This document shows, piece after piece, positions 18,427 through 44,409 of a stretch of 64,000 bases of DNA. A program made the position numbers and the translations under genes. The notes below the pieces were generated by a model. It did not search any database. It was not told where the DNA came from and saw only the letters and a program-made list of their open reading frames with translations. The first letter of the stretch is position 1. Each line of letters opens with the position of its first letter. This DNA comes from Cyanophora paradoxa CCMP329 (Eukaryota; Plantae; Glaucophyta): NCBI GenBank assembly GCA_004431415.1, contig QPMI01000593.1:124001-188000 (forward strand), given 5' to 3'.

Positions 18427-20192
18427 ATGGCGGCGGGTATCGCAGGCCCGAGCGCCGCCCCCGCAGCTGGAGCTCACCAGCGCCGGCGCCGCGAGGTCCT
18501 CGCGGGGTCCGTTTCAGGCGCAATCACGCGGATGTGTGTGGCGCCGCTGGTGAGCGCCTTGTATTGCTCATTGTGGAGCGCCATTAGACCGCGTCCAGAG
18601 GCTGGGACTCATCGAGAGAGCGCAGGATGTCGTGAAGATTAGCATGCAGCTCAACCCCGATAAGGACCGCTGCTTCGTCTCGACTTCCAAGCGCATCTAC
18701 CGCGGAGGTGCAGCGCGCGCGCGCGCCTCTTTTCGCGCCTCGAAGCCCCTCCGCCTCAAATCTCCCGCGTCCAGGCGGCATCGTGTCCTTCTGGACGGGA
18801 AATCTCGCGGCAGAGTACCTATGGGCGTGTGCGCGCGTGCCGCCCTCCCCCGTCCCACTCCAGATGCCGCTGATGCCCGCCGCCCGCGCAGCGTACGCCG
18901 CTGTTCAGTTTGTGGTTTACAGCGAGCTGAAAACGACCGTCGATGTGCGCCCTTGCCCCGCCCCGCCCGGCCCGGCCCGGCCCGGCCCGGCCCGCCCGCT
19001 TGGGCCCGGCCCGCCTTTCGCTCACCAGTCCGAGCAGCGGATGCTACCCGCCGACTCGCGCTTCAAGCCGGCCGAGGCCCTCGTCTGCGGGGCCCTGGCC
19101 GGCGCCGTCGCCACCGCAGCCACGGTCCGCTTCGCCCCCCGCGCCCTGCCCGCGCCCGGTTCGCGCGTCGAGCGGGGAGCGCGTACGCAGTACCCCCTGG
19201 ACCTCGTCCGCACGCGGCTCGCCCGGCAGGCGGGCGACCTGCAGCGCCTCCAAAGCGTGCGCCCGGCCGGCCCCCGCCCCCGCCCCCGCCCCTCCCTCTC
19301 CTCCTCTCCGCGCGAGCGCCGCGCGCGCGCAGTCCGCGGCGCGCCCGACGTTCCGCCGGGTGTTCGAGGAGGTGAGGAGGGAGGGCCCCTGGATGCGCGG
19401 TTTCTTCCGCGGGCTCGCCCCGGCCCTCGGCCAGGTCCCCCATCCCTCCCCCCCTTCCCCCCCCCCCCCCCTCTCCCCCCTTCCCCCCGCTCTGACGCCG
19501 GGCCCGGGCAGATCGTACCCAGCGTCGCCCTCCACTTCTCGATATACGAGTCCATGAGGGCGGCCCTGGAAGCGGTAACCCCACACGCCCCGTCGGCGCC
19601 GCTTCGCCCTGCCCCACTGAGCCGCGGGGCCCCGGGCAGGCGGGGGGCGAGCGCAGCCGCGCCCTCGACAGCTCGTTCGCCGGCGCCGTCGCGGGGGCCA
19701 CCGCTAAGGCTGTCACGTACCCCTTCGACCTGGTGCTCATGTATCCCCCTCCGGCGCGCGCGCCGGCTCACGCTGGGACAGGTGAAGCGGCGCATGCAGG
19801 TGGAGTGGTCCTCGGCTGCCGTACCCGGGGCGGTTCGCCGTACCCGCAGCAGACTTCTTCGTCTTCTCTGACTCAGTGAGCCCGTCGCAGGCCGGCGGCG
19901 GGGGTACCGTCGCCTCGCGCATGCTCGCGATCGTGAGGGCCGAGGGCCCCCGGGGCCTCTTCCGGGGCCTGACCCCCGCCCTTGCGGTGCACGCCCTTTC
20001 CCCTTCGGGCCTCGCCCCCCGCGCCGCCTGTGGGCTCAGGCGCGGCGCGCGCAGAAAAGCGCGCTGGCGACGGGCCTGACCTTCTGCGTGCACGACGCCG
20101 TGTCCACCCTCCTCGTGAGCTGGGACGACCCGGCTGCAGCTGGCCGCGACGAACTGCAAGGGACATCGACATCGACAGCCCGCGGCCGGTGA
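18427..20192 (+). CDS. SLC25A19: Mitochondrial carrier family protein, thiamine pyrophosphate carrier-like (SLC25A19/TPC1)
   Basis: Three PxDxx(K/R) repeats (APL/DVVKISMQ, YPLDLVRTRL, YPFDL/VKRRMQ). VLAGSVSGAITR, SFWTGNLAAEYL..YAAVQF and KSALATGLTF match my recollection of the TPC subfamily. Confidence 0.8.
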
Positions 20193-21045
20193 CGCCGACG
20201 CGCATCGATATCCTTCCCAACGCTGCCGATGCGCGTGCGCGTTGCGCGATGCGGGCATATAGAGGCCTTCGGGCCTAGGCCTTCGGGCCGAGGGACAAGT
20301 AGCTGGCCGCCGTGCCACGGTGCCTACAGCTAGCTAGCCATGTAGCTACTAGGCTACTAGGCTACGTATACAGTCCCTTGGATTCCAGAACCTTGCCCGG
20401 ATCCGGATCGACCGGGCAACCGCAGCACAGTACAGGACAGCCGATGACTTCGTAATGCAGTAGGAGTCGACGCTAGTAAATAGCTGCACTGCGGCAGGAA
20501 ACGACCGTCGGACGTTGACGTCTGTCCCGTGGCCCAGCAGCTATAAACGTGCACGTTCGCAGAAGCCCGGCCCCAGCCTGGCAGAGGCCGGGCCCAGGAG
20601 GGACTGCACTGGCAGCTACCATGCCGGCGCCCACGGCCAGCTGCAGCTGAAGCCAGCTGCGCATGCAGGCGGCGGCACTGCGGCAGGCCACGCGCACGCT
20701 AGCGCTCAGCGGCTCCTAGGCAAGCCTGCCGCCGCTGCCGGCGCCACCCAGGCCCCCGAATTCGAAGGCGCCGCTGCTGCTGTGGAGAGGCCAGTTCGCT
20801 TAATTATAAGAGGGAACTTCGCGGAAGCGCTCTGAATTAATATTCAAAACGCCCACGAAAGGGGCTCTACTGGCTCAGGGCCCAGGCCTGCCTAGGACGA
20901 CGAGCCTAGCTAGCTGCAGCCTGCAGCTGCAGCCCGCAGCCGAGTTTCCTTTCACGAAACACGCGCGCAAGCTGGGTCAGTTCGCTGAAGAGGAAAACGC
21001 TCGGAAACGCCCACGCAAAGGGGCCCCGGCAGGGGAAAAGGCAAA

Positions 21046-21118
21046 CGCTCCTGCCTGGGCTCGAACCAGGGACCTTTCGGTTAACAGCCGAACGCTCTAC
21101 CGGCTGAGCCACAAGAGC
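21046..21118 (-). tRNA. tRNA-Asn (GTT)
   Basis: 73-nt cloverleaf GCTCTTG...TTCGG-CTGTTAA-CCGAA...CCTGG-TTCGAGC-CCAGG-CAGGAGC-G; intact A and B boxes. Confidence 0.96.
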
Positions 21119-21451
21119 TTGAAAAATTCGCGATCCCGTCAGGGTCCGCGTCCGGTCGCCGGCCCAGGCCGCACAACCGATCGCGCCGGCGCGCGCCGCG
21201 GCCGGCGCCGCTCGCGGCCGCGCCGCGCGGCGGTTGATCATGAGCGGCTCTCCTAGGCATGCCGCGGGCCGCAGAGCGGCGCAGACTGCCCGCAGCTGCA
21301 GAGTCACCCCTTAAGCTCAAGCGCTAGCTAGCTAGCTAGCTATAGCCTAGCTATAGTACTGCGCGCGGCCCGCGGCCGCGGGATCCCTGAGCGGGCCGGG
21401 CCCGGGGCGAAAAGGGCGAATTCGAGAGGGCGGAGGGGAGAAAGGGGCAAA

Positions 21452-21524
21452 CGCTCCTGCCTGGGCTCGAACCAGGGACCTTTCGGTTAACAGCCGAACG
21501 CTCTACCGGCTGAGCCACAAGAGC
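21452..21524 (-). tRNA. tRNA-Asn (GTT)
   Basis: Identical copy, offset 406 bp from the previous one. Confidence 0.96.
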
Positions 21525-22198
21525 TTGAAAAATTCGCGATCCCGTCAGGGTCCGGGTCCGGTCGCCGGCCCAGGCCGCACAACCGATCGCGCCGGCGCCT
21601 CGGCTGCGCGCCGGCCGTTGAGCGAGTAGCTCAGCTCAACTGTTTACATGCCACCTCTCCTTCTGGCTTGTGCGCTCGCGTGCTGCCAGCTCGCGCTCCG
21701 AAATGTTGAGCTCGACTCTCGACAGCAGCTTTCGGGGCGGGGGGTCAAGGTCATCTCCTAAACGACGCAACCGACGACGCGCGGCCGGCAGTAGCTTTCG
21801 TTAGATAGCATCCGAATAGCAGCGATGCGGTTGCCGGGGCTGTCGGAGCCGGCCCCATCGCCGCCTGTCGTTAACACCGACATGCAAGTGATCACCGGCC
21901 AGCAGCCTTTACAGGATCCTGCGCATCACAAATACATTATAAACAGAGAGTTCGTCGCGCACGCCTTGCCGCCGCCCCGCTCGGACAAAACGCTGACGAG
22001 CCGCGGCCCAGGGCCTCCCAGTTTCCCGAGGGCGCAGTCGCGCTGCCGAAGCCGCCTCCCGGCAGCAGTCCGGCTCCAGTCCCAACTATCGGTCCTTTAG
22101 GTTCGCCGCGGGTGCCCGCGCTCGTTTGCTCTCGCTTCTAACGCCTTCGAACCAGCGCCAACGAAGAATCACAAGAAGGGGTGGGCGCCGCACCTTAA

Positions 22199-25100
22199 AT
22201 GGGATCCACGTGCGTTCCGTGTGTAGAAGCTCGCGATAGGCGCACGCGGCCAGAAGTCTCGCAGCCCAGTCGCGAGTTTTGCAGGCTGCCGACCGCTGAC
22301 CGAAACGCAGTCGGAGTGAATATCACGCGCTACAACCTGAATTGGCTCTTTACATGGTTCGCGCCGCCACGCTGGCGCCGCCCCCGGCGCCTCGCGGATT
22401 TGATCCGCCCTGAGCGCTCCCCGGCAGGGCCTTCCTCCAAATCTGGACCGGCACGGGTGCGAGGAGTTTGCACCGGTTTTCAATCCCTGTTGCCGTGCCG
22501 ACGGAACCGCCGCGCGCAGTCTTCAACGCGAGGATTATCGTCCAGGTGTTGCTCTCCTGCGGCATAGCCACCATCTTCGGCTACTTCAGGCACTCCTTTT
22601 TTCTCGCGCGCGGGGCGTGGGATCGTCTCGGCTCAGCTTTCACCGCCGCAGGTGCGACCCGGCGAAGTCGGACTGGACTAAGTTCGACAAGAGCGGCCCG
22701 ACTGTGGCGCAGGCGGACTGGCAGATCTGCATCCCGTGAGCGCCCGCTCCCCTTCTCTCTTCCTTCCGCCGCTCGCTCACGCTCGCGCAGGCTCGCCAAC
22801 GGCGAGGCGCTCCTCCTCTCCAGCGTCGTCGCCTTCCTCGTCCGCTCTCGCCCGCTCCTCCTAACGATCCGCGCCCGCCTCCTCATACCCGCCCAGATCG
22901 GCATGTTCGTGTCGCTGGTGTTCAGCCGCTGGTGGCAGAACCGGCAGCTCCTCCAGGTCCGAGAGAGCGGCGCAGGGGGGCGTGGCGGCGGTCCGAGCCG
23001 GCTCGTCCCGCCCGCGCGCAGGGGATCATCGGGCGCACGGGCAACTTCACGCTCCAGGTGGCCACGTACATCGTCGGCGACGACGACGCCACCCGCCGCG
23101 CCCGGTCCGCCCCGCCCGGGGCAGGCAGGCAGGGAGGGGCGGCGCGGGGGCGGCCCCTCGCAGCCTTCAAGCGAAGCGATGCCGGCGGGGGCTTAGGCGG
23201 AGCCGGCCTAGCCCTAGACGCCCTCACCTCGCCCCGCCCCGCGCCCCGCCTGACGCCGCCCCTGCAGGTACAACATCATCCGGTACGCGAACCTGGCGCA
23301 CGTGCTGGTGTACAAGCAGGCCGGCCTCGAGGCGGACCTGAACCCCGACCAGCTCGACGCCCACTACGACGTGCGCCCCGCCGCCCCGCTTTGTTCGCTT
23401 CTTCGCCTCCGCTTGCTGTCGTCCCTATCTTTTCTTTGTAGGATATCTTAAGACGAGTAGGCTCTTAACTGAGTTTATCTCAGCTTAGCTCGATGCCCGC
23501 CCGCCCCGACCCCGCTAGACTGCTCGGCTGCGCGCCGGACTGCCTGGCGCTGCCTTCGCTCGCTTCTGACGCGGGGGACGGGCCTCAGGATCTGGTGAAC
23601 GGTCAGCTGCAGCTCATGAGCCCCGAGGAGTGGAAGATCCTCGTGCGTACCCCCCTCCCGCTCGCCCGCCCGCCCACCCCCCGCTTCCGGGCGTGACGCC
23701 GCTGCCTCGCCCCCCGCAGAAGCCCCTCCCGAACAAGTGGCAGATGGGTGCGGGCCGCCATCTGGCCGGCCGGCCGCCCGGGCCGTGCCCCCGCCCCGCC
23801 CCGCCGCTCACGCCGCCGCGGCAGTCTACAGCTGGGTCGCGTGCCTTGTCCGCGACTGCGCTGCCACGGGCCGCATGGTGCGCGGGGGCCGCCAGCCAGC
23901 CAGCCAGCCGGAAGCCAGACCGGCGCCCTCTGAAGCATGCATGCTTCCCCGCAGGTCTTCCCCTCGACGATGCTTCCCAACTTCCAGATCGATCTGACCA
24001 CCATGCGCGGGAGCGCGGGGGTGCGCCTCCGCCCCCGCCCGCCCCGTCCCGCCCCGCCTCGCCTCGTCCCGTTCCGTCTCGGCCTCCACTGAGTGCTTCG
24101 TTCGCCCTCAGGACATCTTCATGGTCCTGCACACGCAGGTCCCCTACGCCTACGGTGCGCCCCGCTTCGCTCCGCCACGCCCCGCCCCGCCCCTCTGCCT
24201 TCCTCGTTCGCCGCGCCGACGCCGCCGACGCCCGCCCCGCCGCGCAGTGCACCTCCTCACCATCATCGTGAAGATGTCCGCACGCCCGCACGCCGCGCGC
24301 CGCCCGCTGCCGGCTGCGCGGGGCCCGGGCGAGCGTTCGCCTTGGTGCGCAGGCACCTGGTCTTCATCACGCTGTACGCCTCGACGGTGCTCGGCGTCGG
24401 GTTCCAGCAGAAGCAGGGCGAGCGCATCATCATGGGTCCGCCCCGCCCCGCCCCCCTCCCCCTCCCCCCCCCCCCCCCCCCCCCCCCCGCCCACGTCCCA
24501 TGTCACGCAGGGTACCTTATCCTCTTCTTCAACATGCTCATCTACGAGGCGAGCCCCGCGCGCGCGCGTACCCCGCCCCGCGGCGCCGCGCTGACGTACC
24601 CCGGCCCCCCGCAGGGCCTGCTCTCCATCGCCGACGAGCTCGACAACCCCTTCGGCGGCGACTACGGCGACTTCCCCAAGTACCCCCATCCCTTCCCCCC
24701 CCCCACCCCTCCCCCGCCTGACGCCCGTTCCCTCCTCCCAGGGGCAACTACATCAAGAACCTCCTGGCGGTCACCAAGTCGCAGCTCGACATCATCGGGA
24801 AGTGCGTACCCCCGGCTCGGGAACCCCCCCCCGGACGCCCCGGGCCGGCCGCTGACGAGGCGGCCGCGCTCAGGCCCCCCCCGGCGGTGACGGAGCTGCA
24901 GCGGAGCCCGCCGCCGGCCGTGCCCTCGCTCCTGGACGAGGCCTGCAAGCTCGCCCCTACGCAGGAGGTGCGGGCCTCGGGGGCGGCGGCGCCCCCGCCG
25001 GCCCCGCTGCTCGCCGCCTCGTCGGCGGGGCTCCCGCCGGGGGCCGGCAACCTCTACGCCTCGCCGGTCATGTACGAGTCCAGCGGGGCTCTCTTCCCCG

Positions 25101-25210
25101 CCGTACCCGGGGACCTCTACTCGGGCCCCTCCCCCAAGGAGGGAGGCCCCGCCGTGAACGGTGCGCGGGGTCGCCGCGCCTGTCCCGCCTCCTTCTTCTT
25201 CTTCTTCTAA
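22199..25210 (+). CDS. Bestrophin family anion channel, many small exons (3' end approximate)
   Basis: IGMFVSLVFSRWWQNR, IIRYANLAHVLVYK, VLHTQVPYAY/VHLLTIIV and GLLSIADELDNPFGGDYGDFP are bestrophin motifs. Confidence 0.9.
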
Positions 25211-26377
25211 GCGGCGCGCAGGGGTACGGAGCCCGAGCAGGACGCTGGCCATATAGCAGGGCGCGGCGGGCACTTGTGCCTGGGGCGCTGCCGGCCCTCT
25301 CATCCCCGCTTTTTGAGGGGGCCGCTGGCGTCCCATCACGTACTAAGATACTTAAAGCTTTTATTTGCATATCCATGCACCTTCGATATTGATGACGAGC
25401 CCAGTTAAGCGAGTTCTTATCATCAGAAGCAGCCGCAATTTGTATTGAAGCTCTACTTTCCGCCCGAAGTCGTACGAGAATGTCACTTTGTGCTACGTAT
25501 ACGGTAGATATCGATGTTAACGTTGCCCTTTAGTTAGGCCCATACTTAGTAGGCCGCGGTAGGCGTACCACCAGCCACAGTCCAGCCACAGTCCGGTACT
25601 AGCTTAGGCTTGCCAGCGCAAGTTGCAATTGCTCTATTTTCGGTTTGTAGAAATTAATTCCACGATTCGAAGCGTACGGTGACTGCGTACCCCAGCCGCT
25701 GGTGAACTCATGATCATGATCAGGATATCGATCAGACTCTCAGAGCGCGCGACCCGCGTCGACGACCAAGCCGGCCGCGGGGAACGGGTGCGCAGCTGCA
25801 AGCCGGGAAGAAGCCGTCTTCTGCGAAGAAGGCGCCGAATTAATCATAACTTTTAGTAATATTCGAAATTAAAGGCGGCCTGCCGCGGCCAGTGGCCGAC
25901 CGTCGGACGCCGAGCGGCAGGCGTTCGAGGCCGAGAAGGCTGGGCTGAAGAGCCGCGGAGCAAGCCGACAGCTGCAGGCCTAGGATGGCGGATGAAGCGG
26001 AGCTCAGCGGCTAGGCCTAGGACGAGCTTTTCCCGGGTCCAGGCGGACTCCGGGAGCCGGGAGCTCGATCGCAAGCTCGAGGTGCGCATATGCGTGCCTC
26101 ATGATCAGTGCCCGCAGCTGGCCCGGCCCGTAGCCCGTGGGCTGTCGGCCATGGCCAGCGGCGGCGTCCGACGGTCGTAGAAAAATCATTAATATTCAAT
26201 TACAATTAGTTACTGACGCCGACTCGGCGACGCCCGCCGCCCTGCCACATGCGCATGCGCAGGCCTTCTACTCGTCCGATAGGGAGCCCCAGGCGTAGCT
26301 ATAGATGCGATGAGTCGAGATCCCATATGCATATACATGTGCTCCGCTTCTCGTGCAAGCGGAGTTCTCGATTCGAT

Positions 26378-29300
26378 TCAGTGCGCGTGGGAGTGCTCGT
26401 AGAGGCGCGGGGTGGTGAAGGCGAGGACGTTGACGAAGCGGGGGAGGCCGACGATGAAGGGGTACAGCACCACCTTGCCCAGGAGGAGGGCGAGGGGCAC
26501 GCGGTTGGCGACGAGGAAGCCGGCGGCGTGGGCGAAGGAGCGGCGGGCGACGGGGCGCGCCGCGGAGAGGGCGGCCGCCGTCGCGAGGAAGAGCGCCAGC
26601 GGGAGCAGGCCCGAGGCCACGGAGAAGGCGAGCGAGGCCCGCCGCTCCCCGCCGTCCTTCGCCCTGCCCGCCCGAGTTGGCGCTAGGGGGGCGCGAGAGG
26701 GGGGGGGGGGGGGGGGGGGGCGCGAGGGGGGGGGAGGGGTGGGGGAGGGGGCACATGAAGGGGTAGGTCTCGTGGAGATGGACCAGGGTGCGACGTGAGG
26801 GAGACGGTCAGCGCGAACTGCGCGCTCGCGAGAAACGCAGAGAGGGCCTGCGGGGGTACGCGAATGAGCGCCGGCGGGGGTACACGATCGGGCGGGCGGG
26901 GGGTACGCGGGCGGGCCTGGATGAGCATGAGGACGGCGACCTTGCGGTGGACGCGGGCCGCCAGGTCCGCCGCGCGCAGCCCCGCGGCGACGTCGGCGGG
27001 CCCGGGCGGGCGGCGCGGCGCCGCCGCCCCCGCCCCGCGCGAGGGCCGGGGCGGGCCGAGCGGGCCGCCGCCCCAGGACGAGGACCCCTCAAAGGAGACG
27101 CGGTCGAGCCGCAGGGGGTACGGCTCGCCCAGGCCCAGGCCTCCCAGCGAGCGGCCGTCGGGGTACAGCGGCGCCCGCAGCGGGGGGAGGGCGGCCGGCG
27201 GGAGGAGGGGCAGGTAGGCGGGTGCGAGGCCGGGGAGGCCGCCGCCGCCGGTGGGGGGGGAGGGGCTCCGGGAGTTGGAGGGGAGGGGGGTGAGTGCGAT
27301 GGAGGAGGGCCGCCGGGAGGTGGAGGGGAGGGAAGCGAGGACGACGGAGGAGGGCCGACGGGGGCGGCCGCCAGGGGGTTCATCGGAGGGGTACACGCGG
27401 CGGGGCGCGAGCTGAGGCGAGGAGAAGGGTCGGGGGGAGGCGGGGGCCGAGCGCCTGGCGTGGCCGGGGGATCCCCGCAGGGAGACGGCGGGGCTGAGGG
27501 GGATCGAGGGGCGGCGGGAAGGGCGGCGGGAGGCGGCGGCGAGGCGGCGGGAGATGCGGCCGGAGGGGGAAAGAGAGCGGAGGGAGGAGGAGGCGGCGGC
27601 GGCGGCGGAGACGCCCCCGGCGAGGAAAAAGCGCTGGGCGAGGGCGAGGGCAGTGCGGCCGATCCGCCCGTCGTCGCTGAAAAACGCCAGCGCCGGCGCC
27701 AGGAGCGTCACCGCGTCGACCGCGAGCCCCGCGAAGAAGACCTGGGGTGGTACGGTCACGGGGCGGGGCGGGGCGGGAGGGGAGGAGCGGGGGGGGGGGG
27801 TACGGGGCGCGGGGCGCACGCCGGGGCTGTGGACGAAGCCGAAGCAGACGGTCTTGAAGACACGGTTGGAGGAGAGGAGGTATGCAAAGAGGAGCACGTC
27901 GCCGTCCGTCGAGGAGGGCGCGGCGGCCGCCCCCCGCTCGGGCCGCCTCCGGGGCTCGACGGAGCGGGGGCAGGCCGGCCCCAGCGAAGGCGAGGCGGGG
28001 GCGGCGGGCGGGGGCGGCGGATCGAAGGCGCGGTCAGCGAGGCGGAGGAGGAAGGGGCGGTCCGGGGGCGGCGCGGCGCGCAGGCCGGGGCGCCAGCTCG
28101 GGAGGAGGTCGCGCAGGCCAAAGGCGGAGGGGGCGGAGCGGAGGGAGGGCCCGAAGAGGGCCGAGAGGGCCCACGAGGAGCCGAAGATGAACAGCGACAT
28201 CACCTGCGGGGCGTACGGGTACCGAGGATCAGGGGGGTACCGGTCTGGGGCCGTTGCCGGGCGGGGCGCCGGCGCCGCGCGCGCATGCGCACCGCGTTGG
28301 CGAGGGCCTGCGTCCATGTGTACCGTCGTCCAAGCCCGTCGAGGAGGCTCATGCCGATCATGTACCCCATCTCGGCGACGAGGAGGAGGGAGGGTATGCA
28401 GAGGAAGAGGATGCAGGCGCGGGCGCGGCGCCAGGACTGGGAGCGGAGGAAGGGGCCCCCGCCCCAGGGGGCCTCGTGGAGGGCCCACAGGCGCCAGCTC
28501 ACGAACGCCGTCGCCGCGATGAGGAGGCAGTACCTGCGGAGACCGCGCGGCTCGGAGGGGGGGAGGGGGAGGGGGCGGGGGCGGGGGCGGGGTGCGCGCG
28601 CGCCACCAGAAGCCGAAGAGGCCGGCCCAGCCGGGCACGGCGCGGGAGAGGTCCACGCCGGCGGCGGTGGCAACGCCGGTGCCCCAGAAAAGCAACTGGA
28701 CGAACAGGAGCGCGGCGGCCACCCAGGGCTCGCCCTGCGCGGCGGGCGAGGCTCGAATCCGGTGGGGGTATGGGGGCGAGGGCCGGGGTGGGGCGAGGCC
28801 GCACCGGGCGCCGCCTGAGGAAGAGGGACCAGAAGATAACGGGAAAGCCCTGCGGCGAGTTGAGGGCGGGGCGGGGGCGGGGCGGGGAAAGGGAAGGGAG
28901 GGGCGGCGGCCCCGGGCCCGCCCCGCACCAGCAGGGGGCTGACGAGGACGGCGACGACGGCGGTCTGGCAGACGAAGGAGAGCTTGTGGAAGGGTATGAG
29001 GAGCCAGCTGCGCGCGCCGCTTAGGAGCCTTAGGAGGCTGGGCGCGGGCTCGTGCGCACGGGGCGACGACGAGGAGGCCGTAGGCGACTATGCCGAGGAA
29101 GGAGCCGGCGGCGGCCGCGGCGGAGGGCGCCGGCAGCGCCCCGCCCCGCTCCGGCTCCGGCCCGCACGAGAAGGCGCTCGAGCTCCGGACCCAGGGCCGC
29201 TCGTCGGGATCGATGTCGGGCGCGGGCGGCGCTTTCAGCGGCGATCTCGAGGCGGGCGTGGCGGGCTCTGCGCCGGCGTCGATGGAGCTTTCCCGGGTGC

Positions 29301-29469
29301 TGTAGCTGTGGGCGAGCTCGGTCGCCTCGGGCTCGGGCTCGGGCACGAGCCCTTGCAATTGGCCATGGCTGCAGCTGGCGGCGGTCCCACAGATGGGCGA
29401 TCGCGAGCTCGAGGGGGGCGAGGGCGGGCAGGCGCAGGGCCCGCGAGCTCGAGCGGCCTCGAGGTCCAT
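26378..29469 (-). CDS. Multi-pass membrane protein of unknown family with a large Ser/Pro/Arg-rich loop
   Basis: At least 8 hydrophobic segments (FLGIVAYGLLVV; WVAAALLFVQLLFW; ACILFLCIPSLLLV; VFFAGLAVDAVTLL; VAVLMLIQ/ALSAFLA; GLLPLALFLATA); ends ...RLYEHSHAH*. Confidence 0.65.
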
Positions 29470-31742
29470 ATTTATACTGACGTTGAAGCGCGCGTGCACG
29501 TGCGCGTTGATGACGCCCTCGAGCTCGGGCCCGGGGCCGCCGCTGCCGACGCCCCCTAGAGCCGACGCCGCCGGAAATTGCAATTGCCTCGAATCGAAGC
29601 TGGGCCGGGGCGCTGCAGCTGCACCGCGAATCGATCCGTGTCGGGCCGCGGTCCAAGCCACGCAGAAATCAGACGCACAGCGCTAGCTGCAGGATGCGCG
29701 CGCCACCGAAACCGCTGGGACTTGAACTCCGGCGGGTAGTCGGCGCAGAAAGCAGCTGATCGATATCAAAACTAAAGTTGATCCTGCCAAATGGCGGCGG
29801 CCGACACATGGGGCGCCGACGCGCCGTGCACGTGCTTGTCGCGACACAAGCTCAAGAAGCTAGCGCTTGATCATGAACTTGAACCAAGGATCGTACGCGT
29901 CGACGTCGACGGCGCCGGAGCGCGATCTCGATCGGTCGCGGCCGGCCAAGCGCGGACTGTGGGTCGCATCCGGGGATCCCGCCGTCATCCCCGGATTCCC
30001 GGCGCGGGCACCGCCGCGCGCGCGGCGATTCCCGGTTATCAGGGGTATGACAGGCCGGAAACCCTCTTTTCCAGATGTCCCAGAACTGTATGATTTTAAA
30101 AAAGGAGTTCGCGGCGTCTGAGGGGCTTCGTTTGTGCAAAAACATGGAGCATTATACGACTAGACCCGATATCTTTGCAGCCAGGCGGCGTCTATGAACT
30201 GGGCTCCGTATGGTCGACCTTGCAACCACGCACAAGCGCTAGCACGCAGTTCTGGGCGCCGCAAGCAGCTGCGACATGAGGCGCAGGCCAAAACGCAACG
30301 TTTCAGCTAGTTAGCCCGCCGCTTAGAGTGACGACGTCGACAGGCGGCCAGCAAGGGGGGTACGCATTGCAGCCAGCAAGCACGACGTCACTCTGCGCCC
30401 GCAGACCGTCGGACTCTGCAGGCGCAGCGCTAGCACCGCACGTGAGCAGCTGTGCGGCCGGCCGCACGCATGTGATCGTGAGCAGCTCTGCTTGAAAATC
30501 GCGAGCTCGTTGTGATTAGCAGCTATAGGACGCGGAGCGGCAAGCGCACTATAGAGCTAGAACAAGTATACAGCATAAGGAATCTATATTAGCTACACGC
30601 GCGCATTTGCCGCCCTCTCGCTCGCGTGTGCACGTACGCGTGGTCATTTGACCACACATGTACAGCATATGCATGCGCAGCATATGCATATCGCGCAGCT
30701 GCAGCTGCAACTTGCAACCGAGAGCCGGACACTTAGCAGCTCATCTAACACTGTGAGTCGCCTTACTTTGAAGCTACATAAACTGCCTAACTTGCTCGCA
30801 GCGCTAATCCAATCGCTCTCTGTGGCGTGTGGCCAATTGGCCACACAGCAGCTGAACAGAGAAGCGAGCCTTTTCACGGCGCTCGCTGAGGCTGGTTGGC
30901 TGGAAACTGCTTCGATGCATGATGCATGAGCGCACCTTCTGACTACCGAGCTCCCGGACGAATGCTGCCGGCTTGCCGAGGGGGGGGGGGTGGCGGGGGG
31001 GTATCAGTTCTCGCCAGCTCCCGCAGCTGACGGGGACCGCGCCGGGCCCCAGCTTGTGGCTGCAAAAGAACGCATATGCGCCGCGCATGCACGCCTTGCT
31101 CGCTAGACCCGCCGTAAGCGCCCCAGTGCTGAGCAGCACGCGGACGCCGCGACGTATATGGGATGACCACTGCTGGCGAGCTCCCGCGTATTTGCAATAG
31201 ATGTACAGCATGCCATACACCACTCCTGCTTGCATATTTACGCCCCCTGCGCCCCGCACTCGATACACACAAGGCATATACATACTTCATAGGATTGGCG
31301 CATTAGAACGCTAGTATTACCGGCCTGTCTAGCCCCTCGCACCCGGTTTCGCCACTGATTCGCCAGCTCGGCAGCTGCAGCTGCAGGCCGCCGCCGGCGC
31401 CCGGGAAGCGTACGCGTGCGCGTCGATCGACGTCACACATCCCATCCACGCACATACATATACGTGCGCCATCAATGAAAATTGCATGCGCCAGCTAGGG
31501 TACCACGCCGCGGTCCACGCGTACGGTAGAGGAAGTTGTGAGGAACTTGAGGAACTTATCGGGCTCGGATCGCTCTAGCTAGCTAGCTAGCGCTCGAGCT
31601 GAAGGGATGATACTGCGGCATGCCTAGGGGAGCTGGGCTGCTCGCCCATGATCATGCAACCGCAGCCGGCGCCGGCGCGATCGGTTGTGCGGCCTGGGCC
31701 GGCGACCGGACCCGGACCCTGACGGGATCGCGAATTTTTCAA

Positions 31743-31815
31743 GCTCTTGTGGCTCAGCCGGTAGAGCGTTCGGCTGTTAACCGAAAGGTCCCTGGTTCGA
31801 GCCCAGGCAGGAGCG
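31743..31815 (+). tRNA. tRNA-Asn (GTT)
   Basis: Intact cloverleaf, preceded by tttttcaa and followed by short T runs. Confidence 0.96.
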
Positions 31816-32148
31816 TTTGCCCCTTTCTCCCCTCCGCCCTCTCGAATTCGCCCTTTTCGCCCCGGGCCCGGCCCGCTCAGGGATCCCGCGGCCGCGGGCC
31901 GCGCGCAGTACTATAGCTAGGCTATAGCTAGCTAGCTAGCTAGCGCTTGAGCTTAAGGGGTGACTCTGCAGCTGCGGGCAGTCTGCGCCGCTCTGCGGCC
32001 CGCGGCATGCCTAGGAGAGCCGCTCATGATCAACCGCCGCGCGGCGCGGCCGCGAGCGGCGCCGGCCGCGGCGCGCGCCGGCGCGATCGGTTGTGCGGCC
32101 TGGGCCGGCGACCGGACGCGGACCCTGACGGGATCGCGAATTTTTCAA

Positions 32149-32221
32149 GCTCTTGTGGCTCAGCCGGTAGAGCGTTCGGCTGTTAACCGAAAGGTCCCTG
32201 GTTCGAGCCCAGGCAGGAGCG
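32149..32221 (+). tRNA. tRNA-Asn (GTT)
   Basis: Identical copy 406 bp downstream. Confidence 0.96.
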
Positions 32222-32492
32222 TTTGCCCTTTTCCCCTCTCGGGGCCCCTTTCATCAAATTCCCGTGGGCTTTGCAGAGCGTTTGCCCCTTCAGCGAACTG
32301 ACCCAGCTTGCGCGCGTGTTTTCGTGACAGGAAACTGGTGGGCTTCGGGCTGCAGGCTGCAGGCTCGTCGTCGTAGGCGTACCCCTCTTCGGTTGCCGCG
32401 CTCACCGCACCTTCGTATTGGCCAGCACCGTCACAGTCCGCTGCGAGCCAGGAGCCTCAAACACCCAGCCGACCTTGCAGCCGGTCGGCGCG

Positions 32493-35400
32493 ATGCGGGT
32501 GCAGCCGGCGAGCTTGCACCGCGTGTGCCAGGAGGACGACTATGTGAACTGCGCCGTTCTAATCGATGCCAAGGCCGATATCAATGAGCGCGAGAAGGTG
32601 CGCCGCCGCTGAGCCTGGCATCGCATATCTCGGCGTGCTACCAGCGCTCCCGGTCCGCCCGACGAGCGGGCGACGCGTGTCACGCGAGCGAGGGCCCTGC
32701 CGGCGCATAGGACCACCCGAGCGCCGCGCCGCTGCCGGAACTGCATCTCAGGGCCGTAACCGCCTGGCGCAGGACACGGGGAGGACGCCGCTGCACGTCG
32801 CGGCGATGTGCGGGAGCCTGAACTGCGCGGCCCTGCTCATCGACTACGGGGCCCAGATCGACTCGCGGGACTCCTCCAACTACACCCCGCTCCATGCGGC
32901 CTGCATGACTGGCCACTGGAAGGCGGCCGAGCTCCTCCTCAAGCACGGCGCCGGTGCGCCGCCCGGCCCGCGTCCCCGCGAGCCACGCCCGCCGCCGCCG
33001 CCGACGCGCCGCGCCGGCCGCCGGCCGCAGACGCGAACGACAGCCGGAACCGGAACGGGAGGACGCCGCTGCACACGGCGGCGGCGGCCGGCTCGATGGA
33101 GTGCGTGAAGAAGCTGATCGATTTCGGGGCGCGGCTGGACGCCAAGGACGAGGGCGGCTACACGCCCCTCCACAGCGCCGTCTTCGCGGGGCAGGACCGC
33201 GTCGTCGCCATGCTCCTCGACTACGGCGCCCAGGCCCGCCCGCCCCCGCCCCCCGCCCGCCCTTCTTAGGCTCTTGGGCTGACCGGCGGCCTCGCGGGCA
33301 GGTGGACGCGAAGGACATCTTTGGGGACACGCCGCTGCACCTCGCGGCCCGCTCCGGCGAGGTCGAGTGCGCCCGCCTCCTCATCCAGAAGATCAACGAG
33401 CCCGGTCCTTACAACTTCTCTTGCTTGCTTTCCTTTTCCTTCCTTATTCGGAGGGCAGGTGGCGACCCGAAGCGGATGGACGCGGTGAACAACTACGGGC
33501 GGACGCCGCGGCAGCTGGCCAAGGACAAGGCGCACCGGGAGATCGTGGACCTGCTCGCCCGCTCGGGGGCCGCCGAGGGCGACGCCAGCGTCGCCGGCTC
33601 CGTCGCCGGCTCCCAGCGCGCCCTGGACTTGAACGCCCCCGAGCGCGGGGGGTACAGCCGCTCGGGGGCGGCCACCCCGGGGCTGGCTCCGGCCGGCGGG
33701 GACGGGTACGGGCAGCCGCAGCGGCCTGCCTCGGCGTGGGACCGGGCGGGGTACGAGCGCGCCTACGGGGAAACGGAGCGGTCCCTGGACCAGGGGGCGG
33801 CCCCCCAGGGGGGCGGCTTCCGCCCCGCCTCGCCCCTGCGGGGCTCGCGGGGCCTGCCGGGGGCGCGCCGGGCCCAGTCGCCCTACTACGCGACCGGCGC
33901 CGGCGGAATGCGGCCGGCCGGCGCCGGCGCCGCGGGGGCGCCCCGCCGCAGGAGCCGCGCCTGCTCCCGCACAACAGCTCCTTCGGGGCGGGGCGGGCCC
34001 GGCGCTGGCCGAGCCCGGCGGCGGCGGCGGCGGCCCCGCGCAGGCGCCCTCGCGGGTCTTCCACATGGCGGAGGCGTGGCGGCAGCACGGGACGATCGCT
34101 GCCGACCCGGCGCTGCTCGCCCGCTCCTACCTCGGCGACACTGCCTCCGCCGGCGCCGGGCCCGCCCGCAGCGCCGCCCCGGGGCGCGCCCCGGCTACGG
34201 CTCGGGGTACGCCACTCCGGCCGCGCCGTTCGGGGAGGGCCCCGCGGGGCCGGCCGCGCCGCCGGCGGGCGGCCTGCACAACTCGCTGGGGGCCCACCAC
34301 GCGTCCACGCGGAGCATGGGCGGCGACCCGGGGCCGGGCGGGGGCGGGGGCCCCTCGGAGTCGTTCGCGGCGGCGCGGCAGCGCGCGGCGTCGGCGTTCG
34401 ACCCGAACAGCCGCTTCGACTTCGCGGGGGGGACCTCCGGCGAGGCGCGGGCGCGGGTGGCGCAGCTGCAGGAGGAGCTGCGGGCGCGCGACGCCGAGAT
34501 CGCCCGCCTCCGCGCGGACGTCGACTCGCTCCTCCGCGACCGCGCCGCCACCGAGCCCCTCCGCAAGCGCTGCGCCGAGGTTTGCCGGTTTGCTGCACGC
34601 CCCTAGGAGACCGGCGACCGATCGCCCGCCGCGCAGCTGGAGGGGGAGAACGCTCACCTTCGCGAGGAGAACAAGCGCATCCTGGAGGAGGCCTCCCACG
34701 ACCGGGGTACGCCATTCTCCTCGCTCTCGAGGGGGGTACACCGTATCCCGAAAACGACGCCGTACCCAGAGCTGGCGCGGCGGCTGGACGGGGCCATCGC
34801 GTCGATCCGGCAGCAGTGCCAGGACGAGGTCAACGCCGCCGCCGGCCGCGTGCGCCCCGATTTGATCTCCGATTTGATCTCGAATTTGATCTCTGATTTG
34901 ATCGCAGGCGAGGGCCCTGGAGCAGGAGCTTGAGCGGCTGAGGGGCGCCGGCCCGGGCTTCGGGGCGGGGCCGCCGGCCCCGGCGCCCCGCGATGGGCCC
35001 GCCGGTGGGCCCTACGGCTACGCCCGGCGGGACGAGCCGCCTCCGCCGCCGCCGGCGTACTACGGCGGCGGCGCCCCTCGCAGTGGGGCCGGGGGCGATG
35101 ATGGACGGGGCGCAGGGCCCGCTGCCCCCGCAGCAGGACCGCCTGCAGTTCTTCGGGCCCCGGGGCGTCCCCGGCCCGCAGCCGCACCCGTCGCAGGCGC
35201 CGCAGCAGCCGCAGCAGCCGCAGCCGCAGCCGCAGACGCCGCAGCGGGAGGGGAGCTCGCTGCCCAACCCCTTCGCGGGGCTCTTCGGCGGCTCGGACAA
35301 GAAGGAGAAGGGCGAGGGCGGCTTCCGCCTTGGCGGCCTCGAGAAGCTCTTCTCGTTCGGCAAGTCGGACGAGGACGAGGAGCAGGAGCGGCGCCGCCGG

Positions 35401-36449: not shown

Positions 36450-39400
36450 CTACAGATCGGAGAGGTCGAGGGCGGACTGGACGCGGGCGATGGCGCCGCC
36501 GCCGCTGAGGCCGGCGTACCCCAGGAAGCGCCCGACGGTGCCGAGGCGCCCCGCGAGGCGGGAGATCCAGGCGGAGAGGGACTTGGCGCGGGCGCGGGCC
36601 GCGGGGCTCGTCGCGGCGACGGCGCGCAGCACGGCGCGCACGTTCTGCGAGAAGTGCTCCGCGCTGAGGACCTGCGCTCGCCCCGTCAAGTCTCGCAGAG
36701 AAGCTTAGGGTGGGGGCGGGGTGCACCGTCATCGTGAGGGAGAGCTGGAGGAGGGCGCGGGGCCGGAGGAGCCCCTTCACGAAGGCGCCGAGCACGTGCG
36801 CGCTCCGCATCCGCCTCGCGGACGCCTCGCTCAGCATCAGCGGCAGCGCCACGGGGCCCAGCTGGGGGTACGTCAGTTAAGTAGGACGGGGGGGGGGCAG
36901 AAGCTGGGGGGGTACCAGGAGGCGGAGGACGTGGGGCCGGAGGAGGAGGGGCATGCAGTCGGGCCCGAAGAGGAGGGGTACGACCTCCGGGCTGAAGAGG
37001 AGCCGCGCGTTCTCCTCGTTGTCGAGGAGGAAGGGGGCGTTGTGCTCGGCGAAGAGGAGCGGGGCGACGAGGGGCGAGAGCAGGAGGTCCACGTAGGGGC
37101 GCGTGAGGAGGATGCGCGCCACGTGCGGCTCGAACAGGAAGCGGGCGGTCGGGGGCGAGAGGAGCAGCGGGCCGCACTCGGGGCCGAGGAGGAGCGGGGC
37201 GATGTGGGGGCCCATCAGGTGCGGGGCGGCGCGGGGGCCCAACAAGTGCTCGGCCACTCCAGGCTGGAGGAGCAGGGCAGCGACGCGGGGCGAGAGGAGG
37301 ACGGGGCCGAAGTGGGGCGAGTAGAGGTGCGGGCCGAAGTCCGGGCCGAGGAGGAGTCCAGCCGCGTGCTCGCCGAACATGAGGGGCGCCGTCTCCGGGC
37401 TGATGACCAGCGGCGCGGTCTCGGGGCTGAGGAGGGCCGGGCCCGCGACGGGCCCGAGCATGGCGGCGCCGACGGGGCCGCTGAAGAGGAGCGGGGCGAG
37501 GCGGCGGGAGAAGAGGACCCGCGTGTTGTGCGGGGCGAGCATCAAGCGAACGTTCTCCACGGCGAACATGTGGCGGGTGATGTGCGGCGCGAAGAAGGCC
37601 TCGGCGAGGGCGGGCGATAGGAGCCGGGGGGCCACGTTGCGGAGGAGCAGGGGGCCGGCGACGGGACCCAGGAGCAGCTCGGAGACGTGGGGCGAGAAGA
37701 GGAGCGGGGCGACGTGGGGCGAGAGCAGGTGCGGGGCCGCGACGGGGCCGGAGAGGAGGGGGCCCATCTCGGGGCCGAGGAGGAGGGCGGCGCAGTGCGG
37801 GGCGAGGATGACGGGGGCGAGCTCGGGGGAGAGGAGGCGCTCGGCGACGGGCGGGGAGAAGAGGAGCGGGGCGACCGAGGGTCCCAGGAGGTGCGCGGCC
37901 ACGCGGGCGTTGAGGACGTGGCGGGCGGTCGAGGGCGAGAGGAGGCGGCGGGCGTTGTCCGGGGAGAGGAGCAGGGGCAGGAAGCGCGGGCCGAAGAGCA
38001 GGGGCGCCACGGAGGGGCTGTACAGGAGCTGCAGGACGTGCTCCTGGCTGCGAAAGGGCGGAGGAAAACTCAGCCCAGAGATAATTCGAGGAGAGCATAG
38101 ATAGATGGATGGATACCTGAAGAGGGGGGCGCTCTGCTCGGAGATGGTGGCGTGGGCGGCGGGGCCCTCGAGGAGCAGCCGGCCCATGGCGGGCGAGAAG
38201 GTGGCGGGGGCGAGCAGCCGGTTGAAGAAGAGGGGCGCCAGGGGCCGCGAGAGGGCGACGGGGAGCACGGCCGAGACGAGCGCGTGGTTCACGGCGCCCC
38301 CCGCGCGCGCCACGATCGGCACGACCGCGCGCAGCGGCGTGTGCGTCGTCACGAAGCGCACCAGCGGCGCCCCGAAGATCATCGAGGTCATCTGCGCTAG
38401 ATTTAAGGGGGGGGCGGGGAAGCGAGGCGGGGTACGACGCGCCTTCGGGTTGGCGAGGGCGACGGCGGCGGCGCGCTGTGCGAGGAGGGGGGCCAAGGGC
38501 CCCACAAAGTACAGGGAGGCCCCCACGCCGGCGACCTTGGCCGCCTGGGCCGCCAGCCAGCCGACCCAGGAGCCCAGCCCGGAGCCCTCCTCGCCCGCCT
38601 CCACAAGCCTCGATTCCTGTACCCCCTCGCCCTCCTCGCCCGCCTCGGAGGGCGGGGCCGAGGCCTCGCCATCGGGTCCGCCCGCCTCGGAGGCGGCGCG
38701 CTGGGCGTCCCACAGCGCCTTGGGGATCATCTGGCTCGTGTGCACCTCCTCCTCCACTCCCTCCTCCTCCTTTTCCGGCCCCTGCCGCGGGAAGAGAGGA
38801 GGTCAGCCGGGGAGCGGGCGGGCGGGAGGGGAGGAGCCGCGCACCTCGCGCGGGGGGGCGGTCGGGGCCTCGGGCGCCGCTTGTTCCTCCTCGACGGGGG
38901 CGGGCGGGCGGGCGGGGGATACGCGGCGGAACGCGTGCGGGGAGCGGAAGGCGGAGGCGATGTCGTGGGGGGAGGGGGGGGCGAGGCCCCGCGGGCCCTC
39001 CGAGGGGGGGCTACCCGGGAGCGACTGCTCCCCGGGGGATATGGGGTCCTGCGGGGCGGGGCGGGGCACGGCGGCTCAGCGGGGCGCGGGTGGCGCAGGC
39101 GGGGGCGGCACGCACTGGGCACTCGGAGGCCGAATCGCCGAGCTCGGAGAGGGGAGCGCGGGAGGAGCGGACGCGGCGCAGCGGCGTCGAGCGGCCCGAC
39201 TCGCTGGCGGCGTCGGCGTCCAGCAGGGCCGCGAAGATCTGCAGGCAGCTCTGCGCCACGCTCGCGTGCGGGCCGGCGGAGAGCCCATCGAATCCGAAGT
39301 CGCCCGCGCCGCCCGCGGAGGCGAGGTCGCCTCCGTCCGCAAAGTTGGCGACGGATACGGCCCTCCGCATCGGGACCGCGGCCGCCGGGGCCGGCGAGGC

Positions 39401-43423: not shown

Positions 43424-44080
43424 CTAAGACCAGACGCGGACCTGGGAGAGGGAAAGGATTATCGGGGGGTATGGCTGCACGCGGGGATCAAGGTGTACCG
43501 TGTTGTCTTCGGAGCCGGAGAAGATCACGTTATTGTGCTCCACGATTGAGTAGATCTCCCGCTGGTGGCCCTGCGCCCCGCGCTCAAGGGGTACAGGCAC
43601 AGGGATGGGGTACGGCACCTGCAGGACCTTCACGCAGACATTGCTCCGCGTGTCCCACACCCGGATCGTCGAGTCTTGCAATTGCGCCCCTGAAACGGCA
43701 TACCTAGGCCTCCGCACACGCTCCTCGAGCTCCAGCCCGCGTCAGCGCGCCCGCCGGCGATATGCGGAGCGGGGAATGCGCTTGCGCCATGACCGGCGCC
43801 GCTTCGGCGGCCGCCGCCCGCCGTTCTGCCTCTTCCGGGATCCTCTAGATCTTCACGCCGGCGCCGCTGCTTTGAAGACGAGTCCTTCGTCGACGCCTCC
43901 CTTCGCCGCGCGTACTCCGCCCGCAGGGCGTCGTTCTCCGCCTCCGCCTGTCATGATCAGCTGCAGCTAGTGCTTCAGGCTTCGCCGCGAACTGGGCATG
44001 CCGTCGCGCGCCGTACGCGTCTGAGGCCTAGGGGCTGAAACTCCGGTCCGGACCTCCATGAAAACTTCCTCCTCGCTCAT
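43424..44080 (-). CDS. Short gene: coiled-coil stretch followed by ~1.5-2 WD40 repeats (possibly truncated or a pseudogene)
   Basis: SGAQLQDSTIRVWDTRSNVCVKVLQ/GHQREIYSIVEHNNVIFSGSEDNT/VRVWS*; upstream MSEEEVFME and AEAENDALRAEYARRRE. Confidence 0.55.
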
Positions 44081-44409
44081 ATATGCATGCCGGAGTATAC
44101 GTCGACCAGCGCGACGCGCAGGCGCTCTTAAAAGCTTCCCACGTCACAACCTCGCCCTCCGTCGCGCGGCCTGTCGGCGAGTGCCGCGCGCTGCTCCATA
44201 TGCTGTCGTTGCTGGGCTCCGGCGCCGGCTGGGCTCACGAAAGATGATATCGATGGGAAGCTGTTTCGGCTCACAGTGCTTCGCTCGCTTTCACGCTGAG
44301 CTCGAGGGGTCGCGTTTTTTTCGTGATCGTTTGGTTGGCGGGTCGACTCGGCGTGGGGCAGTTTGTTCTCGGGTGTCTCGGCGTTTTTCTACAGCTAGGG
44401 CTTCCAGCG

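Follow-up and report, generated by a model that had tools for sequence, protein, structure and literature searches.

Mirror-image pairs of tRNA-Asn genes around a 10-kb segment in Cyanophora paradoxa: probably an old inverted duplication of a tRNA cluster, with arms homogenised by conversion

Four tRNA-Asn genes in the stretch of Cyanophora paradoxa DNA analysed here (64 kb, the window) are carried by two mirror-image arms of about 0.7 kb each, placed around 10 kb of single-copy DNA (the core). The original prediction described this locus as a tRNA-bounded cassette, potentially invertible or insulated. The question is whether the arms act on the genes that they enclose or whether a duplication of tRNA genes has left these genes between its two copies. 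The coordinates of the features are given in Table 1.

Table 1. Features of the inverted-repeat locus and its surroundings (positions in the window).
Feature	Positions	Strand	Basis or remark
Left arm	20890-21608	-	local alignment against the reverse complement of 31661-32378
Diverged outer part, left arm	20890-21039	.	3' trailer of outer tRNA; compared with 32229-32378
Identical tract, left copy	21040-21598	.	100% to right copy; putative gene-conversion tract
tRNA-Asn(GTT), outer left	21046-21118	-	ARAGORN, Rfam
tRNA-Asn(GTT), inner left	21452-21524	-	ARAGORN, Rfam
Probable bestrophin-like gene	22513-24823	+	span of exon-like segments, many short exons
tig00021281_g19932.t1	26381-29469	-	annotated gene model, 850 aa
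Non-coding tract, ~2.2 kb	29470-31660	.	between g19932 start and right arm
Extra partial repeat unit	31575-31660	+	(CTAG)4 plus the bases after it; only at the right arm, on its core side
Right arm	31661-32378	+	reverse-complement partner of left arm
Identical tract, right copy	31669-32227	.	100% to left copy, 559 bp
tRNA-Asn(GTT), inner right	31743-31815	+	ARAGORN, Rfam
tRNA-Asn(GTT), outer right	32149-32221	+	ARAGORN, Rfam
First ankyrin-repeat exon, right-flank gene	32566-33108	+	Ank, E 7e-17

The anatomy of the arms agreed with the original prediction in each detail that was compared. It had described reverse-complementary arms, each with two identical tRNA-Asn(GTT) genes directed outwards; the alignment paired 20890-21608 with 32378-31661, the genes were offset by 406 bp in both arms, and all four are transcribed away from the core, leftwards in the left arm and rightwards in the right arm. 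The four sequences are identical over 73 nt, with the anticodon GTT called by ARAGORN, and each scored 68.8 bits in Rfam (gathering score 29). We also observed, as predicted, that the inner copies of either arm carry a C, and the outer copies a G, at a diagnostic base ~32 nt upstream of the tRNA, and that the CTAG repeat has equal length in both inter-tRNA spacers.

With a cloverleaf, A and B boxes and a T-run terminator, the tRNA-Asn genes look functional. For example, the outer left gene has the A box TGGCTCAGCCGG and the B box GGTTCGAGCCC, with a T4 run ~10 nt downstream; the first T4 run of the inner left gene is ~45 nt downstream. Besides these elements, the upstream element AATTTTTCAA is present at the tRNA-Asn genes. 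Even with a permissive Rfam threshold, the 20-33 kb region contained no further RNA gene.

The duplication is limited to the arms. The 64-kb window holds no further copy of an arm, and no protein-level similarity was found between the two flanks or between the two halves of the core; a larger ancient palindrome was thereby ruled out.

The identity between the arms was not uniform. The tract 21040-21598 has no mismatches in 559 bp with the reverse complement of 31669-32227. In the left arm, this tract runs from 6 nt past the 3' end of the outer tRNA to 74 nt upstream of the inner one, and it contains both tRNA genes, a common 72-nt upstream block and a 250-bp spacer. In the outer ~150 bp, 124 of the 136 aligned columns are identical; the remaining 12 mismatches (~9%) are accompanied by 5 indels. 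Since the difference between 0/559 and 12/136 has a Fisher p of 2e-9, uniform divergence of the arms is rejected. The identity profile that had been proposed as a check thus gave 559 identical positions of 559 in the inner part and a sharp fall in the outer part, whose divergence had been noted earlier. The earlier alternative, that the tandem duplication predates the inversion or is kept by arm-to-arm conversion, fits well with this step and with the agreement of the inner C and the outer G between the arms.

We think it probable that the locus arose by inverted segmental duplication of a small tRNA cluster with a single anticodon, that conversion has made the arms identical, and that the core is an ordinary bystander. 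The starting unit would have been two tRNA-Asn genes 406 bp apart, and the whole pair would have been duplicated in inverted orientation. The duplication appears to be old, because the outer ~150 bp, which would have drifted since, carries ~9% mismatches as well as indels. The inner 559 bp probably became identical recently; the sharp identity step points to non-allelic gene conversion between the arms of an older inverted duplication as the likeliest cause. Selection on the tRNAs cannot explain the identity, because the microsatellite and the non-coding spacer are identical as well. The same inner-C/outer-G difference in both arms fits one long tract copied from arm to arm.

The right arm appears to be the likelier source copy. 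The periodicity of the units extends past the right arm on the core side, where the extra partial unit has 87% identity to the spacer 31928-31972, and it does not extend past the left arm. In the right array, each of the two tRNAs is preceded by a complete spacer, and the left arm ends abruptly within a unit. If 569 bp had been copied anew into an older paralogous site very recently, the picture would be the same as with conversion. In addition, polishing of the long-read assembly with short reads (PMC6704402) could have made the inner tracts seem more alike than they are. Comparisons outside the locus returned nothing: exact-product look-ups of a 992-aa ORF and of the annotated protein had no match in other assemblies or relatives, and a metagenome scan with the tRNA-plus-upstream motif gave no match.

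Nearby identical tRNA pairs are reportedly described in the Dictyostelium genome paper. Clusters of tRNA genes for the same amino acid, less than 1 kb apart, are common across eukaryotes (Bermudez-Santana et al. 2010, PMC2888827), and a cluster counts as homogeneous when two or more tRNA genes from one isoacceptor family lie within less than 1 kb (PMC2888827). The tRNA-Asn(GTT) genes, identical and spaced by 406 bp in either arm, form such clusters. Like other homogeneous clusters, they make up an identical parallel pair within 1 kb, with nearby copies produced by local duplication and with intact Pol III promoters and terminators; unlike them, the Cyanophora pair has a second, inverted copy at a distance of 10 kb and shows a sharp, conversion-type identity step. 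The genome paper on C. paradoxa (PMC6704402) does not deal with how tRNA genes are organised.

Gene conversion between the arms of palindromes is well documented in mammalian sex chromosomes (PMC6790999). The Cyanophora arms have the corresponding signature, an interior far more alike than the edges (0/559 versus 12/136 plus 5 indels), although here conversion is inferred within one genome and not by comparison of species. As in the sex-chromosome palindromes (PMC6790999) and the large inverted repeats of plastids, near-perfect arms contrast with the edges, the spacer is unique and inversion by crossover is possible. On the other hand, the arms at this locus are ~0.7 kb long, compared to kb to Mb in those systems, and carry tRNA genes rather than protein or rRNA genes.

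The core was said to contain a bestrophin, a membrane protein and a long non-coding tract. The latter two were borne out, by an annotated model and by the lack of codon periodicity, respectively, while the bestrophin received weak, exon-by-exon support. Exon 22801-22965 had its best match in PDB bestrophins (residues 77-95, E 0.09), and exon 24591-24692 in bestrophin-2 (residues 286-306, E 0.59); the two exons are collinear on a common strand. From these two exons only, we consider the gene a probable bestrophin-like channel. Other searches with parts of this gene did not add to the assignment: Pfam gave no family for nine single exons, a 265-aa frame had no match in a word search, a single 55-aa exon retrieved only a spurious repetitive protein in the exhaustive representative search, an Atlas search gave no usable match, and two further exons had no bestrophin match in PDB.

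The annotated model tig00021281_g19932 maps at 100%, with introns. Its product has ~9 hydrophobic helices and proline-rich linkers, as a membrane protein, and no Pfam family or relatives were found for it. The two core genes are intron-rich and convergent: the 5' end of the bestrophin-like gene faces the left arm, and that of tig00021281_g19932 faces the right arm. The annotated model, the introns and the GC3 above 0.9 (0.9-0.97 in frame for tig00021281_g19932) indicate that the core genes are host-like. In the non-coding tract beside the right arm, counted up to the extra partial unit (29470-31574), GC is 0.52-0.64, and neither codon periodicity nor an Rfam match was found. Outside the repeat, the ankyrin-repeat exon of the right-flank gene begins ~190 bp from the right arm. 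Under the duplication reading, two convergent host genes would by chance have lain between the copies, and the core as a whole would be unremarkable single-copy DNA.

Could the tRNA genes nevertheless insulate the core? At the S. pombe mat locus, B-box inverted repeats flank a domain. In the imr repeats at the centromeres of the same species, as here, tRNA genes or TFIIIC sites lie in inverted repeats flanking a domain; there, CENP-A or silent chromatin is separated from its surroundings, and the barrier was demonstrated by mutation and ChIP (Scott et al. 2007, PMC2040200). The Cyanophora locus instead encloses two ordinary genes and has no compositional step. Four intact B boxes are indeed placed mirror-symmetrically around the 10-kb two-gene domain. 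Such symmetry is uninformative, however, and the outward orientation of the tRNA genes is not diagnostic, because barrier activity in S. pombe is independent of tDNA orientation (PMC2040200). The CpG o/e was 1.07 in the core, compared to 1.10 and 1.12 in the flanks, with similar GC; the core bears genes and is neither repeat-rich nor gene-poor, and TE domains were absent on either side in the ORFs scanned. Any active tDNA may have a local boundary effect, but this would then apply to tDNAs in general and not to this locus in particular. We therefore regard TFIIIC/Pol III-dependent insulation by the tDNA pairs as unlikely. The evidence at the arms consists of sequence proxies only (GC and CpG o/e without a step, genes on both sides, no TE domains), and these proxies appear to give no support to a barrier or to an invertible cassette. 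Frequent flip-flop of the core driven by the arms, with two isomers in culture and with or without functional consequence, seems just as doubtful. Two perfectly matching inverted tracts of 559 bp at a distance of 10 kb suffice for homologous recombination, and the arms do interact, as the signature of conversion shows; still, the assembly has a single orientation, and the ORFs scanned contain no recombinase or invertase domain. Moreover, inversion would alter no promoter-gene link, because both core genes and their upstream 5' regions lie wholly between the symmetric arms. Thus neither mark of a programmed invertible segment, a nearby recombinase or a promoter-gene change on inversion, was observed. 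The Pfam scan, which had no recombinase, integrase or transposase match in the scanned ORFs of the core and flanks, was ORF-based and, in an intron-rich genome, therefore not exhaustive. Occasional inversion is plausible, because any perfect inverted repeat of 559 bp can recombine, but it would then be a side effect rather than a mechanism.

A mobile element (a TIR or composite transposon with two genes) would also place a cargo between terminal inverted repeats, and an inverted duplication can be an assembly artefact of long-read assemblers. Both are very improbable here. A target-site duplication is absent at 20889/32379, as is a transposase in the ORFs scanned; the outer ends of the arms are the most diverged parts, the opposite of transposon termini, which are expected to be the best conserved, and the introns and GC3 of the core genes are of host type. 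As for an artefact, the arms lie inside the contig, have diverged from each other in their outer sequence and are flanked by unique DNA, which is beyond what an assembler would invent. Returning to duplication followed by conversion, the arms would simply supply four active-looking tRNA-Asn genes, and an occasional crossover between them could flip the core without changing any gene's promoter. We infer, by an argument from absence, that the arms have no regulatory role.

The locus offers a clean, small case in which inverted tRNA-gene copies undergo concerted evolution, from an algal lineage that has received little study. It is of use for annotation, with four tRNA-Asn genes at one place, and it may be a hot spot where structural variants arise. 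The case would gain weight if inverted tRNA pairs bracketed genes above chance genome-wide. That C. paradoxa systematically uses such pairs as domain boundaries or as recombination arms for flipping genes we hold to be quite unlikely; if true, tDNA-bounded cassettes would organise the genome of a glaucophyte throughout. A chromatin step at the arms or two orientations of the core, if true, would extend the tDNA barrier or flip-flop biology of fission yeast and plastids to a glaucophyte nuclear genome.

Left of the left arm, a short segment at 20795-20870 matched the trailer at 19 of 20 positions, exceeding 200 of 200 shuffles. It hints weakly at a relic of a third unit.

Gapped local alignment matched the two arms, mirror-image copies of about 0.7 kb, over 20890-21608 and the reverse complement of 31661-32378, in agreement with the original prediction; blastn of arm versus arm gave 707 columns at 95.9%. 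Identity was very uneven along the arms. Segment 21040-21598 is the reverse complement of 31669-32227 with 0 mismatches in 559 bp, a tract that begins 6 nt past the outer tRNA's 3' end (the outer tRNA being the one farther from the enclosed core, 21609-31660), stops 74-84 nt 5' of the inner tRNA, and takes in a spacer of ~250 bp and the CTAG microsatellite. In the outer parts of the arms (20890-21039 vs 32229-32378), 12 of the 136 aligned columns were mismatched, and there were five indels of 1-10 bp. Chance cannot reasonably account for this contrast (Fisher p = 2e-9): at the outer-part rate, 0/559 mismatches would have a probability of ~4e-23. The profile thus has the predicted form, with identical inter-tRNA segments, CTAG repeat included, and a diverged outer ~150 bp. 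In one outer-arm indel (20921-20926 vs the 32350 region) CTGCAG corresponds to CTGCAGCTGCAG, that is, CAG to CAG-CTG-CAG.

By ARAGORN, the 64-kb window contains four tRNA genes and no more, each of them a tRNA-Asn(GTT) gene with an Rfam score of 68.8 bits (gathering score 29). Rfam found no further RNA families in the window, and none in 20-33 kb at a permissive threshold. The 73-nt sequence is the same in all four genes; each has A box TGGCTCAGCCGG and B box GGTTCGAGCCC, as well as an A/T-rich AATTTTTCAA element immediately 5' of the gene. A T4 run lies 3' of the gene, ~10 nt off in the outer copies and ~45 nt in the inner copies. Transcription proceeds leftwards in the left pair and rightwards in the right one, in both cases away from the core, and the spacing is 406 bp in either arm; coordinates and sequence identity here bear out the arrangement first described. 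Within one arm, the two units have in common only ~153-175 bp at 96-99% (the tRNA and 72 nt upstream). One base at which they differ, ~32 nt upstream of the tRNA, is C in the inner and G in the outer unit of both arms, as had been noted.

Features located in and around the arms and core
Feature	Position	Strand	Basis or remark
tRNA-Asn(GTT), outer left	21046-21118	minus	ARAGORN + Rfam
tRNA-Asn(GTT), inner left	21452-21524	minus	ARAGORN + Rfam
tRNA-Asn(GTT), inner right	31743-31815	plus	ARAGORN + Rfam
tRNA-Asn(GTT), outer right	32149-32221	plus	ARAGORN + Rfam
Probable bestrophin-like gene	22513-24823	plus	short exon-like segments
g19932 (eukprot:tig00021281_g19932.t1)	29469-26381	minus	protein mapped back, ~seven exons, most at 100% identity
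Ankyrin-repeat gene, right flank	start ~32566	plus	~190 bp beyond right arm
ORF with DUF3474 match	44058-45458	plus	E 2e-7

The simplest account, which we hold with reasonable confidence, is that an old inverted duplication of the tandem tRNA-Asn pair would have been followed by recent non-allelic gene conversion, or a re-copying, from arm to arm. Uniform ageing of one duplication cannot produce 0% beside 9% divergence, and selection on the tRNA genes cannot keep a spacer and a microsatellite identical. A single conversion tract spanning both units would also explain the mirrored inner-C/outer-G difference; this difference and the identity step fit the suggestion that the tandem duplication predates the inversion or is preserved by arm-to-arm conversion. 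Plastid inverted repeats are known for the same homogenising behaviour. The arms of sex-chromosome palindromes also convert one another (PMC6790999), which is the behaviour we propose for the tRNA-Asn arms.

No additional arm copy was found in the window by blastn, and six-frame comparison found no protein similarity of one flank to the other, of one core half to the other, or of the core to the flanks. The inverted duplication thus extends over ~0.7 kb only, and the absent flank and core-half similarity rules out that it is what is left of a larger visible palindrome. Beyond the core-facing end of the right arm the repeat unit goes on at 31575-31660, a stretch that comprises (CTAG)4 and subsequent bases and has 87% identity to spacer 31928-31972, whereas the left arm ends abruptly inside the unit at 21608; the right-hand array therefore appears to be more complete than the left one and was probably the source. 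Immediately beyond the outer end of the left arm, 20795-20870 is possibly the decayed 3' trailer of a third tRNA (19/20 match, AAACGCCCACG-AAAGGGGC), followed by a stretch resembling a tRNA 5' part, a weak hint of a relic.

Both arms are real and not assembler-made, since an assembler cannot create, in the interior of a contig, a pair of arms that differ at their diverged edges and have unique flanks. The 2019 Cyanophora paradoxa assembly, whose contigs bear names of the form tig000xxxxx (gene ids in bioRxiv 10.1101/674762), is PacBio-based, Illumina-corrected and GC-rich at 67.6% (PMC6704402), consistent with 60-82% GC in the window. Short-read polishing could have made the inner tracts look more alike than they are.

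The core holds two convergent genes with their 5' ends towards the arms. The plus-strand gene is probably bestrophin-like: the four best PDB matches of exon 22801-22965 were all bestrophins (VSLVxSRWW site, residues 77-95, E 0.09), and that of exon 24591-24692 was bestrophin-2 (NPFG(E/D)DDDF site, residues 286-306, E 0.59). These matches are individually weak, yet top-ranked, collinear and on the same strand; Pfam on single exons and other searches with unjoined segments returned nothing. The minus-strand frame 26683-29661 retrieved one protein, that of the annotated gene model g19932, with 850 aa, ~nine hydrophobic helices and proline-rich linkers. No Pfam family and, by word search, no relative was found for it; its in-frame GC3 of 0.90-0.97 supports coding status. 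From its start codon to the right arm, 2.2 kb lack codon periodicity. Hence, of the predicted core content, the membrane protein (without family) and the non-coding tract stand, and the bestrophin is probable. Runs of ~52 C (24441-24492) and ~53 G (26699-26751), read on the plus strand, lie in introns of the bestrophin-like gene and g19932, respectively, so that each has a sense-strand poly-C of ~50 nt; the runs pair as imperfect inverted repeats, and the left-flank gene has a similar C-rich run (19430-19484).

That left flank showed a weak mitochondrial-carrier-like exon, below Pfam's cut-off, and nothing else, a further Pfam scan being blank. The minus-strand long ORFs at 36686-38757 had no Pfam match. 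The DUF3474 ORF is probably a desaturase gene, this domain being the N-terminal one of omega-type fatty-acid desaturases.

Any active tDNA may exert a local boundary effect, and occasional crossover within a perfect inverted repeat of 559 bp is certainly possible; still, the sequence proxies support neither a chromatin barrier insulating the core, which we regard as unlikely, nor a core made invertible by recombination between the arms, which seems equally improbable. CpG observed/expected was 1.07 in the core vs 1.10 and 1.12 in the flanks, GC was similar, and ordinary genes lie inside and outside the arms. Because the tDNA barrier of S. pombe is active whichever way the tDNA points (PMC2040200), outward symmetry is no evidence for such a function. 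With both core genes and their upstream DNA inside the core, a flip would leave their drivers unchanged. Among 40 scanned ORFs, there was no reverse transcriptase, integrase, transposase or recombinase domain; mobility is further disfavoured by the lack of a target-site duplication and by outer arm ends that are the least conserved. Most likely, the locus is an ordinary inverted tRNA gene pair duplication with concerted evolution of its arms; same-amino-acid tDNA clusters of <1 kb are commonplace among eukaryotes (PMC2888827). If inverted tRNA pairs proved over-represented genome-wide, the phenomenon would be of more interest than the single locus.

In intergenic DNA around the arms, GpC observed/expected rose up to 1.37 (20001-22000) and 1.52 (30001-32000), compared to ~1.1 elsewhere, owing to many palindromic words of the GCTAGC, AGCTGC and CTGCAG type. 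The word GCGCTAGC recurs at 21321, 29680, 30236 and 30427.
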